Sequence record: PP496441.1
Reading direction: 5' to 3' (one strand)
DNA: 64,000 nucleotides
Position 1 is the first letter of the stretch. Every line of letters starts with the position of its first letter. The notes under the pieces are model-generated. The model worked only from the letters and a program-made list of their open reading frames with translations. It did no database searches and was not told where the DNA came from. Shown here one piece after another: positions 20,559-28,012 of this stretch. A program made the translations under genes and the position numbers.

Positions 20559-23432
20559 ATGTATGTAATCCGCCGAGACGGAAGTCGTTCCTTGTTCCAG
20601 AGCGAAAAAATCCGGGCTGCTATTGAGCGAGCCTTCTTCGCGGTACACGGTCGTGATGCTGATATTCCCACACAGACTGGCCGTGTCACTCAGGCAGTAG
20701 AGTCTGGCTTATCCAGTCAAGAATCTGTCCACATCGAAGTCATTCAGGAAGGCGTACTCGCTGCGCTGATCGCGGAAGGCCACCCTCGCGTCGAGCATGC
20801 CTACCGCGTGTATCGAGACGCCCGCACTGCCCAGCGTGAGCTGCCCCAGGCTTACACTGACGAGAACGGTACTGCTATCAGCATCCCGGCTCTCACCGAC
20901 ATCCTCGCCCGCGTATCCTTCCGCCTGCCCTACGACGTGACGGTTCACTTGGACCTGGTGGCCGTGGCGCGCTCGGCGTTCCTGCAGATGTTCAACGGGA
21001 TCAAGGCAGCTGACGTGCACAACGCACTGATCTTGGCAACCCGTGCGTTCATCGAGCGTGCCCCGGAGTACAGCAATCTGGCAGCGCAACTGCTGCTGGC
21101 CCAGACGGCGCGTGAAGTGTGGGACCTTGACGCCACCACGTACCCCACCGCCGATACCTACGCCAAGTGCTACAAGCAGGATACCGTAAGGCTTCTGATT
21201 GTCGGCGTGAAAGACGGCATCTACGATCCCAAGCTGACCACTGGTGGCAGATTAGGATTTGACTTGGACCTCCTCCGGTCAGCAATCAAACCGGAACGTG
21301 ACCTGCAGTTCGACTACTTGGGTTTGCAGACCCTGTACGACCGTTACTTCATCCGCCGCGCGGGCGAAGGCGTTCGTATCGAAATGCCACAGACGTTCTT
21401 CATGCGGGTGGCCATGGGTCTGGCGATCCTTGAAAGCGATCCAACGTCAGCGGCGCTTGAGTTCTACGATGTGCTATCCACGTTCGACTACATGGCCTCA
21501 ACCCCCACCCTGTTCAACGCAGGCACCACGCACAGTCAGATGTCGAGTTGCTACTTGACTACGGTGCCGGACGACCTGCTGGGCATCTACGGCGCCATCC
21601 AAGACAACGCTATGCTGTCCAAGTACGCAGGTGGTCTGGGCAACGACTGGACGCCGGTACGTGCGCTGGGTAGCCTGATCAAGGGCACCAACGGCAGGTC
21701 GCAAGGCGTGGTCCCGTTCCTCAAGGTGGTTAACGACACCGCCGTCGCTGTGAACCAAGGCGGAAAGCGCAAGGGTGCCGTGTGTGCATACCTTGAAACG
21801 TGGCACATGGACATCGAAGAGTTCACCGAGCTGCGCAAGAACACAGGTGATGATCGTCGTCGTACCCACGACATGAACACCGCCAACTGGGTTCCTGACC
21901 TGTTCATGGATCGCCAGATGAAGGACATGGATTGGACCTTGTTCACTCCGTCGGAATGCCCTGACCTCCATGAGCTGTACGGCGAGGCTTTCAAAAACCG
22001 TTACGAGTTCTACGAGGCGGAAGCTGCCGCTGGCCGTATCCAGACCTTCAAGACCGTGCGCGCCAAGGACTTGTACCGCAAGATCCTGTCCATGATCTTC
22101 GAAACCGGCCACCCGTGGATCACGTTCAAAGATCCGTGCAACATCCGCAGCCCGCAGCAACACGTCGGCGTCGTTCACAGCTCCAACCTGTGTACTGAGA
22201 TCACCCTGAACACGAAGTCCTCCATGCCTGAACTTAAGGACGGCGAGACGGCAGTGTGCAACTTGGGTTCGATCAACCTGCCGCGCCACTTGAAATACGT
22301 GGGCGAAGGTGGGCAGTCTCTGGACATCGACCACGAGAAGCTGAAACGCACCGTGACTCTGGCCGTGCGTATGTTGGACAACGTGATCGACATCAACTTC
22401 TACCCGACCAAGGAAGCGAAGAACAGCAACATGCGCCACCGTCCGATCGGTCTGGGTGTCATGGGCTTCCAAGACGTGTTGTACGCCAACAACGTCGGCT
22501 ATGACAGCGAGCTGGCTACGTTCTGGGCGGGCTACTTCCAGCGGTCCATCGCCTTGTACGCTATCAACGCATCATGTGATCTGGCCCAACTACGCGGTGC
22601 GTACGAATCATTCCAAGGTTCGGATTGGTCGCTGGGTGTTCTTCCAGTTCACACGTTCCAAACCCAGATCGATATCCGTCGTCGTCAGGGCTTCAAGGTG
22701 GAAGCAGCGCAGAAAGCCCAAGATCATGCGTACTTTATCGGCAAAACCAAGATCAACGGCAAGACGCTGAACGAGTTGGAAAGCCAATTGGCGAACAAGG
22801 TAACTCACGGCATGCGTAACAGCAACGTGATGGCGATTGCGCCGACGGCTACCATCTCGAACATCGTGGGTGTGACTCAGAGCATCGAGCCTACGTACGA
22901 GCAGGTGTTCGTCAAGGACAACCTGAGCGGCAAGTTCACCGTGATCAACCGCTTCTTGGTTGAGCAGCTGCGTAATTGCGGTCTGTGGGACTCGGACATG
23001 CTCGACCAGCTCAAGATGAAAAACGGATCCATTCAGGGCATCCCTGAAATCCCGGAAGGCATCAAGGACGTGTATCGCACTGCGTTCGAGTATGAGCCTG
23101 AGGTGCTGATCAACTGTGCCATCCAGCGTCAGATCCCTATTGATCAGGCACAGTCGCTCAATCTGTACATGGCGAACCCGTCGGGTAAGAAGCTGGCGAA
23201 CACGTACGACTACGGCTTCGAGATTGGGTTGAAGACCACGTATTACCTCCGCGCCAAGGCTGCGTCGTCCATCGAGAAGTCCACCAGTCGTACCGGCGGC
23301 GAGTTGAACAGCGTCAAGAACGCTGCGAAGGTAGAAGCCCCCGTTGCTGCTCCAATGCCGGAAGCTGAAGGTGCTGCATGCTTCCTGCGTCCAGGTGATC
23401 CGGGCTTTGCAGAGTGCGAAAGCTGCCAGTAG
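20559..23432 (+). CDS. nrdA: class Ia ribonucleotide reductase alpha subunit
   Basis: ATP cone VIRRDG, SPTLFNAG-like STPTLFNAG, SSCYL, SNLCTEI, AVCNLGS, APTATIS, TTYYLR, C-terminal CESCQ. Confidence 0.97.
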   Translation: MYVIRRDGSRSLFQSEKIRAAIERAFFAVHGRDADIPTQTGRVTQAVESGLSSQESVHIEVIQEGVLAALIAEGHPRVEHAYRVYRDARTAQRELPQAYTDENGTAISIPALTDILARVSFRLPYDVTVHLDLVAVARSAFLQMFNGIKAADVHNALILATRAFIERAPEYSNLAAQLLLAQTAREVWDLDATTYPTADTYAKCYKQDTVRLLIVGVKDGIYDPKLTTGGRLGFDLDLLRSAIKPERDLQFDYLGLQTLYDRYFIRRAGEGVRIEMPQTFFMRVAMGLAILESDPTSAALEFYDVLSTFDYMASTPTLFNAGTTHSQMSSCYLTTVPDDLLGIYGAIQDNAMLSKYAGGLGNDWTPVRALGSLIKGTNGRSQGVVPFLKVVNDTAVAVNQGGKRKGAVCAYLETWHMDIEEFTELRKNTGDDRRRTHDMNTANWVPDLFMDRQMKDMDWTLFTPSECPDLHELYGEAFKNRYEFYEAEAAAGRIQTFKTVRAKDLYRKILSMIFETGHPWITFKDPCNIRSPQQHVGVVHSSNLCTEITLNTKSSMPELKDGETAVCNLGSINLPRHLKYVGEGGQSLDIDHEKLKRTVTLAVRMLDNVIDINFYPTKEAKNSNMRHRPIGLGVMGFQDVLYANNVGYDSELATFWAGYFQRSIALYAINASCDLAQLRGAYESFQGSDWSLGVLPVHTFQTQIDIRRRQGFKVEAAQKAQDHAYFIGKTKINGKTLNELESQLANKVTHGMRNSNVMAIAPTATISNIVGVTQSIEPTYEQVFVKDNLSGKFTVINRFLVEQLRNCGLWDSDMLDQLKMKNGSIQGIPEIPEGIKDVYRTAFEYEPEVLINCAIQRQIPIDQAQSLNLYMANPSGKKLANTYDYGFEIGLKTTYYLRAKAASSIEKSTSRTGGELNSVKNAAKVEAPVAAPMPEAEGAACFLRPGDPGFAECESCQ

Positions 23433-23456
23433 TCTGATCCAGCTGTAATGTAAATG

Positions 23457-23490
23457 ATAGGGCGGGCAGGCAACTGTTTCCGCCCTATTT
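23457..23490 (+). promoter_or_regulatory. strong hairpin between nrdA and nrdB-like gene (terminator or processing site)
   Basis: ATAGGGCGG/CCGCCCTAT stem with CAG-GCAA-CTG cap. Confidence 0.6.
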
Positions 23491-23516
23491 CATCTGTTGC
23501 ACATGGGGCTTACCTT

Positions 23517-24302
23517 ATGAGTGCTGTACCTAATCGTGTGTCCCTAGTGGACAAGCGCATCTTCAACGGAAAGGCTGATGTCAACGCCTTGCTACCGCTT
23601 CGGTATCCGTGGGCCTATGACGCCTACGTGAACGCGAACAAGAACCACTGGCTTCCCGGCGACATCCACCTCGATCTGGATCGAGTCAACCATGAACATC
23701 AGTCGTACTGGCCTGCTGTCAGCCGGTTCCTGATCAGCGTAGCCCAGCGCGCCGAGATCGATCGACAGCACATGCTCTTCGTGTATCGGGCCACCACGGC
23801 GCCCGAGGTTCGTCAGCGCTTCCTCCGCATGGGGCAGGAAGACACCATTGCCATCATGCTGGCGCAAGACATGGGGCTGGCACTGGAAGACTTCATCCCG
23901 TCTCCAGAGGTGGTGTTGTACAAGACGGAGAAAGCCTATCTGGCCGGGCTCATGGAACTGATCGAGCGTAAGCTCTTGTCCGTGGCCGAAGGCAAGTACA
24001 TCCTCGAAGAAGTGCCGGGGGTGCACCAGAATATACGCAAAGCAGTTGAGAACATCCACCGCGACGTGGACTCTCAGTTGGACTTCCTGTTCACCCTGCT
24101 GCGCACCTTCCTTGGCGAATGCGAGGTCAGCTCCTACCGGGGTTGCAACACGCAAGCGTTCTGGCAGAGCAGCAACCAGTACCACGCCCACCTGAACTCG
24201 ATTGTTCTGAACGTTTTGACGGGGGCGCCGGTTACCCCTACGCCGTATCAGACACAGGTGGTCGCAGACAACCAAACCAAAGACACACTGACCTGGGACT
24301 GA
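23517..24302 (+). CDS. degenerate NrdB paralogue lacking metal ligands and radical Tyr
   Basis: KRIFNGKAD..LLPLRYPWAY...NHWLP N-terminus; EEAxH replaced by EDTIA; RDESxH replaced by RDVDSQ; ends LTWD. Confidence 0.8.
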   Translation: MSAVPNRVSLVDKRIFNGKADVNALLPLRYPWAYDAYVNANKNHWLPGDIHLDLDRVNHEHQSYWPAVSRFLISVAQRAEIDRQHMLFVYRATTAPEVRQRFLRMGQEDTIAIMLAQDMGLALEDFIPSPEVVLYKTEKAYLAGLMELIERKLLSVAEGKYILEEVPGVHQNIRKAVENIHRDVDSQLDFLFTLLRTFLGECEVSSYRGCNTQAFWQSSNQYHAHLNSIVLNVLTGAPVTPTPYQTQVVADNQTKDTLTWD

Positions 24303-24304
24303 CT

Positions 24305-25279
24305 ATGACCGTTCTTACTCACGTAAACCCGCACGAACATGAGTGGGCGTTGGAAAAGACCTTGGCGTCAAACTCGAACCATTGGTTGCCCCAAGAGATT
24401 GGACTGTCCACCGACATCCTGCAATGGAAGACCGGACAGTTGAGCGACGACGAGATGCGCATGGTCAAGCGTAACCTCGGGTTCTTCTCCACCGCTGACT
24501 CGCTGGCCGCGAACAACATCATCCTCGGCACTATACGCCACATAAAGAACCGTAACTGTCGCCACTACCTGTTCCGACAAGCGTATGAAGAGGCATTCCA
24601 CACGGAGTCCTACGCGTACGTGATCGAGAGCCTTGGTTTGGATCAGGGTGAGATCTTCAACGCGTACAACGAGATCGACTCGATCCGGGCCAAGGACGAA
24701 TTCCTTCTGCCGTACATCGAGGTGCTGACCGATCCGGCGTTCCAAGCGGACACCATCGAGAACGTCCAGATCCTGCTCAAGTCACTTTTCGCTTTCGCGT
24801 GCATTATGGAAGGTCTGTTCTTCTACGTCGGCTTCGTCCAGATGCTGTCGCTGGGCCGTCGCAACAAGCTGCCCGGCTCCTCGCAAGAGTTCCAGTACAT
24901 CCTGCGCGATGAGAGCGGCCACTGCAACTTCGGCATCGACCTGATCAACACGATCAAGCGCGAGTACCCAGGCGTGTGGACTGCGGAACTCCAGAAGGAG
25001 TGCACCGACATGTTGCGCACCGGCGTTGACCTGGAGCAAGCCTATGCGGTAGATACCCTGCCCAACGGTGTGCTGGGTCTGAACGCGGACAACACACGCC
25101 AGTACCTGGAGTTCATCGCGGACCGCCGCTGCATTCAGGTGGAGCTGCCAGTACAGTACAACCAGAACGACAACCCGTTCCCGTGGATGTCGGAGATGGT
25201 TGACTTGAACAACGAGGAGAACTTCTTCGAGAAGAAGGTGCTTGCGTACCAGCAAGCCGCCGGACTGGAGTGGGACTAA
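24305..25279 (+). CDS. nrdB: class Ia ribonucleotide reductase beta subunit
   Basis: NHWLPQE, FFSTADS, EEAFHTESY, MEGLFFY, RDESGH, NFFE..V.AYQ...WD; start at ATG 24305. Confidence 0.95.
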   Translation: MTVLTHVNPHEHEWALEKTLASNSNHWLPQEIGLSTDILQWKTGQLSDDEMRMVKRNLGFFSTADSLAANNIILGTIRHIKNRNCRHYLFRQAYEEAFHTESYAYVIESLGLDQGEIFNAYNEIDSIRAKDEFLLPYIEVLTDPAFQADTIENVQILLKSLFAFACIMEGLFFYVGFVQMLSLGRRNKLPGSSQEFQYILRDESGHCNFGIDLINTIKREYPGVWTAELQKECTDMLRTGVDLEQAYAVDTLPNGVLGLNADNTRQYLEFIADRRCIQVELPVQYNQNDNPFPWMSEMVDLNNEENFFEKKVLAYQQAAGLEWD

Positions 25280-25393: not shown

Positions 25394-25427
25394 AAATAGG
25401 GGAGTGAGCAATCGCTTCCCTATTTTT
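25394..25427 (+). terminator. rho-independent terminator
   Basis: AAATAGGGGAG...CTTCCCTATTTTT. Confidence 0.75.
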
Positions 25428-26845: not shown

Positions 26846-28012
26846 ATGAACGATGATCTGAAAATCACAGAGGTTAACTCTGTGAAGGAATACGATGAAC
26901 ACGTAAGAAACCTGCTGGTTACCTTGTTGGGGCTCGGTTCTTCCGCCACCCGCAACGATCAAGGTACCCGCAAGCTCGGCGCCACGTCGATCAGCTTCAA
27001 CCTGCTGTCGATGTACCCCTCGATCCCGATGACCACGCTACGCCCGATCTCGTGGGCCAGTATCCTCGGCGAGATGCTGGGTTTCATCCGTGGCGAGACC
27101 AACGTCCAAGCGTTCAAGGAACTGGGCACCAACGTCTGGAACGCCAACGCCAAGGAACCCGCGTGGAAGAACAACGCACTGGCGCCGAATGAGGGTGACC
27201 TCGGGCCGATCTACGGCAAGCAGTGGCGCAAGTGGACGGACACCAAATTGCTACACGAAAGGTCCAGCCTTCGAGAACTTGGCTACACACGCATGGGACA
27301 CGTGAGCCGGTTGACTGGTGATCTTCCCCATGAAGGTCCAACAGGTGACGGCCCTCTGTATGTGTGGGTGAAGGAGGTTGACCAGTTGATGGAAGCCCTG
27401 AACCGCATCAAGGCCAACCCCAACGACCGTCGCGCTGTCATCTCGGCGTGGAATCCCGGTGACATGGACTTCATGGCTCTGCCGCCGTGCCACGTTATGA
27501 TGCAGCTGACCACGGTGCCTTACGCCCAGCACAAGTACGGCTCTTACACAGATGGTGCCAGCGACTTCGAGATCGACTTCAACGAGAACTACCCGGAGCA
27601 GGTGGTTTCGGATACCGTCGAGCCGAATAGCAGCGGAGAGACTGTTCCCCGGTACGCGCTCAATCTGGTCGTGACTCAGCGCAGCCAAGACACCCTGCTC
27701 GGTCGGGCGTATAACATCCCGGCGTATGCCACCTTGCTTCGCCTGTTCGCTCACCTGTTGGAAATGGCGCCGGGCAATCTGGAGTTCAACGTCGGCGACC
27801 AGCACCTGTACAGCAACCATGGGGCAGCCGCCGACGAGGTAACTTGCCGAGAAAGTCTGGACAAGGATGAGGAAGGCGAAAAGCTATTCCAACTCTCTAT
27901 CGTCGGCGTGGACAAGTTCGAAGATCTGGACACCCTCACCGCCGACAACTTCATTCTGACTAATCAGGTTACGCATGATAAGTTGGAATCCGACACCAAG
28001 ATGACTGTGTAA
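26846..28012 (+). CDS. thyA: thymidylate synthase with two insertions
   Basis: DLGPIYGKQWR, NPNDRR, SAWNP, ALPPCH, QRSQD..LG..YN, GDQHLYSNH. Confidence 0.93.
   Translation: MNDDLKITEVNSVKEYDEHVRNLLVTLLGLGSSATRNDQGTRKLGATSISFNLLSMYPSIPMTTLRPISWASILGEMLGFIRGETNVQAFKELGTNVWNANAKEPAWKNNALAPNEGDLGPIYGKQWRKWTDTKLLHERSSLRELGYTRMGHVSRLTGDLPHEGPTGDGPLYVWVKEVDQLMEALNRIKANPNDRRAVISAWNPGDMDFMALPPCHVMMQLTTVPYAQHKYGSYTDGASDFEIDFNENYPEQVVSDTVEPNSSGETVPRYALNLVVTQRSQDTLLGRAYNIPAYATLLRLFAHLLEMAPGNLEFNVGDQHLYSNHGAAADEVTCRESLDKDEEGEKLFQLSIVGVDKFEDLDTLTADNFILTNQVTHDKLESDTKMTV

Follow-up and report, generated by a model that had tools for sequence, protein, structure and literature searches.

A candidate beta/beta-prime ribonucleotide reductase small subunit in Pseudomonas phage vB_PpuM-Pori-4

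Downstream of nrdA, the Pseudomonas phage vB_PpuM-Pori-4 carries two adjacent genes of the nrdB type. The second (gene 2) encodes an active-type small subunit of a class I ribonucleotide reductase (RNR). The first (gene 1) is a homologue of gene 2 that has lost its cofactor site, is maintained by selection, is inherited together with gene 2, and shows losses that are complementary to those of its neighbor. From these features of the sequences, we infer that the two products, here denoted beta-prime (gene 1) and beta (gene 2), probably constitute an obligate small subunit of the beta/beta-prime type, with an origin independent of that of the yeast Rnr2/Rnr4 pair.

The window analyzed here is a stretch of 64,000 nucleotides, identical to bases 1–64000 of vB_PpuM-Pori-4 (PP496441.1, 202.6 kb, host P. 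putida). Within the CEPEST collection, Pori-4 is placed in the G3 cluster of jumbo myoviruses, and its reductase is not mentioned in the paper describing that collection (PMC7616413).

The reductase locus

The locus starts with nrdA (20559..23432, on the + strand, as are all other features of the Pori-4 reductase locus given below), which encodes a class I RNR large subunit of 957 aa, consisting of an N-terminal ATP-cone and the barrel (Pfam ATP-cone, Ribonuc_red_lgN and Ribonuc_red_lgC). The product scored 1224 bits against NCBIfam NF005544, and its top match in the PDB, over the full length, was 5im3 (E 1.2e-302), which we take to be a Pseudomonas protein. An 84-nt spacer that includes a perfect 9-bp hairpin (23457..23488) separates nrdA from gene 1 (23517..24302), the ligand-less NrdB paralogue of 261 aa, which is listed as “hypothetical” in GenBank (Pori4_00023). 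Gene 2 (24305..25279) is annotated as the small subunit and encodes an NrdB of 324 aa without the N-terminal arm, with a Pfam score of 263.8 bits. Downstream of nrdB is a hairpin with a T run after it (25394..25425), resembling a terminator. At the junction between the two genes, the stop codon TGA is followed by two bases and an ATG. The bounds in the GenBank record are the same, in agreement with a first-pass annotation made from the sequence alone, which had described two reading frames separated by 2 nt, with the dead copy uninterrupted. The tight spacing suggests coupled and roughly equimolar translation of the two proteins.

Several side observations were made on the flanking DNA. The arms of the two hairpins on either side of the beta-prime/beta pair are similar at their ends (ATAGGG...CCCTAT), and the hairpins may represent the same repeated intergenic element or terminator type in Pori-4. 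In KoPa-5 (L012, 3196–4044), the GenBank start of gene 1 is an upstream ATG within the hairpin, giving a protein of 282 aa; since this extension is absent from the other family members, the 261-aa start is more likely. The nrdA/beta-prime spacer holds an HNH endonuclease gene in three separate lineages (Peetri, L001 5984–6685; L014 7307–8011; L179 1265–1996), and looks like a recurrent homing site. The Peetri endonuclease has HNH_3 and helix-turn-helix domains, and the nrdA of L014 also bears an intein. When positions 20559–25279 of the window were compared with Lauda (L009), the synonymous divergence was 0.097 for nrdA, 0.063 for gene 1 and 0.296 for gene 2, an inequality within one operon that points to mosaic recombination among the sister phages. 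The thymidylate synthase at 26846–28012 is long, at 388 aa; its Pfam match extends over residues 33–382 on a profile of only 266 positions, showing that insertions are present.

Gene 1 encodes an NrdB homologue with a destroyed metal site

Residues 6–112 of the gene 1 product, which include the arm, could be aligned to residues 4–116 of R2c-type NrdB structures (6y2n, E 5e-12). BLASTP aligned only 29 residues between gene 1 and gene 2. The two families were matched by hhalign with 99.7% probability (E 1.9e-26) over 266 columns, and the two overlapping, full-length homologues share only 21–25% identity. By these alignments, gene 1 encodes a full-length, degenerate NrdB rather than a fragment. 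A split (genes-in-pieces) RNR subunit was also ruled out, as gene 1 and gene 2 each span the whole domain. Gene 1 scored below the cut-offs of both Pfam PF00268 (21.6 bits, cut-off 33.6) and NCBIfam NF005550 (61.5 bits, cut-off 309), which gene 2 exceeded in both cases, and it had no match in PHROGs.

The columns of the six metal ligands of gene 2 (D65, E96, H99, E169, E203 and H206) are occupied in gene 1 by R, D, A, M, V and Q, respectively, and the column of the radical Tyr103 is occupied by Ala. The E96 column alone stays acidic. At the E169 column, hhalign placed the adjacent Glu of Pori-4 gene 1, a residue that is missing in the relatives. In Pori-4, gene 1 has other residues in place of the radical Tyr and at least five of the six metal ligands, and the same pattern is seen throughout the family: in all 15 dead copies, five ligand positions and the Tyr are replaced, the sixth position being Glu or Asp in 13 of them. 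The radical Tyr column contains A, V, I, F or R, and no metal site is left. The first-pass annotation had noticed the loss of the His ligands, one Glu and the radical Tyr, all of which was borne out, but the damage was under-counted, since the Asp of the first ligand and a second Glu are gone as well.

Other residues are retained in all 15 dead copies, among them the N-H-W Trp, the Asp in the R-D pair and the terminal Trp. In the helix homologous to the RDExxH ligand helix (codons 181–201, 24057..24119), the Arg is kept in 12 of 15 dead copies and the Asp in every one, the Glu is replaced in every one, and the second ligand His has become Gln in 14. Gene 1 ends in L-T-W-D and gene 2 in L-E-W-D. 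In beta-prime, this NrdB-like tail is encoded by the final five codons (24285..24299), and its terminal motif is present in the entire family (15/15), with a terminal Trp that is shared with all ten active partners; at the column of the Tyr in the beta tail, the family has no Tyr. The arm and the L-T-W-D tail, both of which had been recognized at first reading, are thus retained.

The AlphaFold2 (AF2) model of beta-prime made from a 44-sequence alignment had a pLDDT of 88 and a pTM of 0.86, with the long helices of a ferritin-like bundle, although this alignment included canonical NrdBs and the model leans toward their fold. Its best PDB matches in Foldseek were the R2 proteins 1syy and 6y2n (TM 0.69). 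When only 5 sequences were used, the model was poor (pLDDT 64) and gave only weak ferritin-like matches. The 13 residues preceding the tail had a pLDDT below 50, and are predicted to be flexible. A BFVD fold search returned ordinary viral R2s only.

Gene 2 encodes an active-type NrdB without the arm

The alignment of gene 2 with 6y2n starts at residue 23 of the latter and continues through its end (E 4e-111), showing that the arm is lacking; about 22 N-terminal residues are missing. Against NF005550, gene 2 scored 501 bits, matching profile positions 64–383 only. We considered whether an arm might be concealed 5′ of gene 2, in the same frame, and rejected this: the in-frame extension (from 24119) does not resemble NrdB. 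Gene 2 and its 9 orthologues have the radical Tyr and a complete set of six metal ligands, which agrees with the initial description of gene 2 as a copy with a full set of ligands and no arm.

Gene 2 and all other partners have Asp as the first ligand and Tyr at the radical site, compared to Glu and Phe in the R2c control, P0226. By its residues, gene 2 is therefore class Ia-like, and class Ic (R2c) was ruled out. The closest solved structures to both gene 1 and gene 2 are those of the class Ic R2c of Chlamydia trachomatis (1syy, 4d8f), which differs in having Glu and Phe at these two sites, whereas gene 1, lacking a metal site, has neither.

Overall, beta differs from canonical NrdBs at only three strongly conserved positions, and is so close to them that it may still homodimerize. 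Close to the metal/radical site, the paired active NrdBs have Tyr94 and Glu101 (24584–24586 and 24605–24607 of the window, in gene 2), in place of the Phe and His seen in 111 of 113 canonical relatives; these residues might give the cofactor altered properties. One canonical relative, P0233 (491 aa, from an ENA contig), contains an internal repeat of ≈100 residues in the middle of the protein, which may be a genuine duplication or may have been created during assembly.

Selection, family extent and gene order

The dN/dS ratio of gene 1 among seven sister phages was 0.04–0.12, compared to 0.02–0.17 for nrdA and 0.02–0.05 for gene 2. Between Pori-4 and Peetri, gene 1 has accumulated ≈40 synonymous and 18 non-synonymous changes (Fisher p 1e-14). 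These ratios indicate that gene 1 is under purifying selection and is not decaying; the paralogue neither evolves neutrally nor is absent from the relatives.

The gene 1 family is small. In searches that covered 5.8 billion proteins and 1.84 billion cluster representatives, nine clusters scored 298–423 bits and the next match scored 138, and eight representatives had E values below 1e-30. Scans of metagenomes and genomes returned almost exclusively canonical NrdBs that matched the arm region alone, and these were used as the negative set. A scan of IMG/VR with the family profile found no relative. Homologues with 30–60% identity to gene 1 were present on eleven metagenomic contigs, corresponding to ten distinct loci (the window is included among the loci, one protein is common to three contigs, and nine isolates were counted apart). 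The contigs are phage-like, with genes for DNA polymerase A, a clamp-loader-type AAA protein and topoisomerase I in the neighborhood. Literature searches returned no description of the family, nor of a role for the arm.

At every locus, the genes are found in the order nrdA (if the upstream DNA is present), dead copy and nrdB, with the last two −10 to +4 nt apart, and at every locus the reading frame of the dead copy is intact. Because the spacing varies in this way, a frameshift fusion of gene 1 and gene 2 was rejected. The dead copy has diverged faster than its partner in all 45 locus pairs (mean identity 42% versus 66%). The pairwise identities of the two proteins are correlated (r 0.90), although co-inheritance is expected of adjacent genes whatever their relation. 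Constraint on beta-prime is concentrated in residues 11–47, 88–112 and 181–201 and in the last residues. The first of these blocks (23547..23657), comprising the arm and first helix, is the best conserved, with 19 of 37 columns at least 80% identical among 13 family members, and aligns to the arm of canonical NrdBs. The second (23778..23852; 12 of 25 columns) ends at the would-be ExxH ligands, where the His and Tyr positions are replaced. Judged by these comparisons, the family is old and its position is fixed.

Gene 1 falls below the Pfam and NCBIfam cut-offs and is annotated as hypothetical, as might be expected of a decaying duplicate that by chance is still open. This reading is refuted by the dN/dS of ≈0.1, by the block-wise conservation, and by a reading frame that has stayed intact on all eleven contigs (ten distinct loci) at identities down to 30%. 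Pseudogene status was ruled out on the same grounds.

Two more degenerate NrdB-like reading frames, with the arm kept and the ligand motifs defective, were found on L053 (3754–4764) and L069 (4038–6005), one of them with an N-terminal extension of ≈320 aa. Neither is flanked by nrdA or nrdB (on L053, the DNA downstream of the reading frame is missing). They may represent other dead-NrdB families and, standing away from nrdA and nrdB, they suggest that dead NrdB folds may have other uses. By analogy, beta-prime itself could function outside nucleotide reduction, its adjacency to nrdB being inherited synteny. We find this very improbable, given that the adjacency is invariant across lineages in which the beta proteins are only 57–62% identical, and that beta-prime retains a tail of the putative NrdA-binding type.

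Complementary losses

The arm is kept in 15 of 15 dead copies, in which no part of the protein is better conserved than the arm block, and is lost or degenerate in 10 of 10 partners, all of which retain the six ligands and the Tyr. It is deleted in the partners of the Pori-4 clade and L007, and shortened and degenerate in those of the other lineages. At the level of sequence, the losses in the two copies are complementary, with the arm only in the dead copy and the cofactor only in the partner.

Of the 120 relatives that matched gene 2 best, 114 had the arm motif and six did not, and all six follow a dead copy. Four of these had been recognized as partners before. The remaining pair (P0290 and P0287, on L178 and L179) was checked afterwards, and the prediction that an arm-less NrdB follows a dead copy held: each is located 2–3 nt downstream of a dead copy of 300–301 aa. 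Conversely, no beta-prime gene was found at 160 loci with an arm-bearing NrdB.

We considered the possibility that beta-prime is a transient maturation factor that assists folding or metal loading of beta and stays outside the working holoenzyme. Yeast Rnr4 has been described as lacking the diiron residues and as a possible chaperone (PMC3824934), and beta looks self-sufficient in its ligands. However, a maturation factor would leave unexplained both the NrdB-type C-terminal tail in all 15 beta-primes and the fact that beta has lost its arm only beside beta-prime, and we regard this explanation as unlikely.

Alternatively, beta-prime could be a decoy or hijacker that binds host NrdA or NrdB through its arm, docking block and tail, silencing or redirecting the host enzyme. 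The conserved blocks of beta-prime resemble bacterial NrdB (35–38% identity over residues 6–111), and the idea gains plausibility from the phage alpha subunit, whose Pseudomonas-type sequence (5im3, E 1e-302) suggests that subunits of phage and host may be compatible. Arm loss in beta is strictly tied to beta-prime, and this points instead to a relation between beta-prime and the phage’s own beta, which makes a decoy quite unlikely. In its concrete form, the arm and docking block would pair with host NrdB, or the tail would cap host NrdA, while the arm-less beta escaped mixed dimers; the phage would then keep its own reductase apart from that of the host, or capture the host radical subunit. 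We give this version only a slim chance.

A proposed beta/beta-prime enzyme and its relation to known systems

The reading that we prefer is that of an obligate pair. The first-pass annotation had offered two options, a heterodimer produced by subfunctionalization and a decoy aimed at the host. Selection, conservation, adjacency, complementary losses and the prediction that held all argue for the former, as far as sequences can tell, while the latter found no direct support. We propose that beta-prime is a folded, catalytically inert NrdB paralogue that pairs with the arm-less beta, resulting in a phage class I enzyme of the form alpha2-beta-beta-prime. In this enzyme, the metal-radical cofactor would come from beta, whose tail would also provide the electron-transfer Tyr. 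The arm at the N-terminus, together with its docking surface, would come from beta-prime and would still be needed by the dimer. The NrdB-type tails of beta and beta-prime would engage the two alpha protomers. Such a pair could have evolved from an ancient tandem duplication, after which the two copies degenerated in complementary ways and became mutually dependent.

The yeast enzyme is also alpha2-beta-beta-prime, with an active R2 (Rnr2) and a paralogue (Rnr4) unable to build a metal site (PMC3824934). The comparison with Rnr4 made at the outset holds only as an analogy: in both cases, an active R2 occurs beside a ligand-deficient paralogue under selection, with a presumed pairing in the phage. 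The origin is nevertheless independent, since phage beta-prime is nearest to proteobacterial, R2c-group NrdB. Gene 1 matched R2c-group and bacterial NrdBs only, and yeast 1jk0_B appeared just as a weak match to gene 2. The phage genes also differ in being adjacent, and the direction of the N-terminal loss is reversed: in eukaryotes, it is the secondary R2s that are described as shorter at the N-terminus (PMC3824934), whereas in the phage it is the active copy that has lost its N-terminus and the dead copy that has kept it. The non-canonical R2 of apicomplexans (R2_e2 clade) is likewise lineage-restricted and coexists with a canonical R2 (PMC3824934), but is eukaryotic, belongs to another clade and is encoded by an unlinked gene.

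Among prokaryotic and phage systems, the split NrdA of Aeromonas phage Aeh1 resembles the present case in having extra polypeptides in a phage RNR and homing endonucleases at the locus (PMC3045599). There, however, one protein is divided into non-overlapping pieces, whereas Pori-4 has two overlapping, full-length homologues. Candidatus Liberibacter asiaticus has extra nrdB-derived reading frames that lack an active site and have been speculated to act in a heterodimer, but these are 125-aa 3′ fragments that are >99% identical to the long gene (PMC5154197), unlike the old, diverged and full-length phage family.

If our proposal is correct, beta-prime would be the first dedicated ligand-less R2 partner in a prokaryote or virus, independent of both Rnr4 and the apicomplexan non-canonical R2, and would argue that one radical-generating protomer per small-subunit dimer is enough for class I reductases. 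The complementary loss suggests that a single arm per dimer may suffice, which would make these phages a natural system for studying subunit asymmetry. A family now listed as “hypothetical” can be given a name, and surveys of phage RNRs that count NrdB genes should recognize beta-prime.
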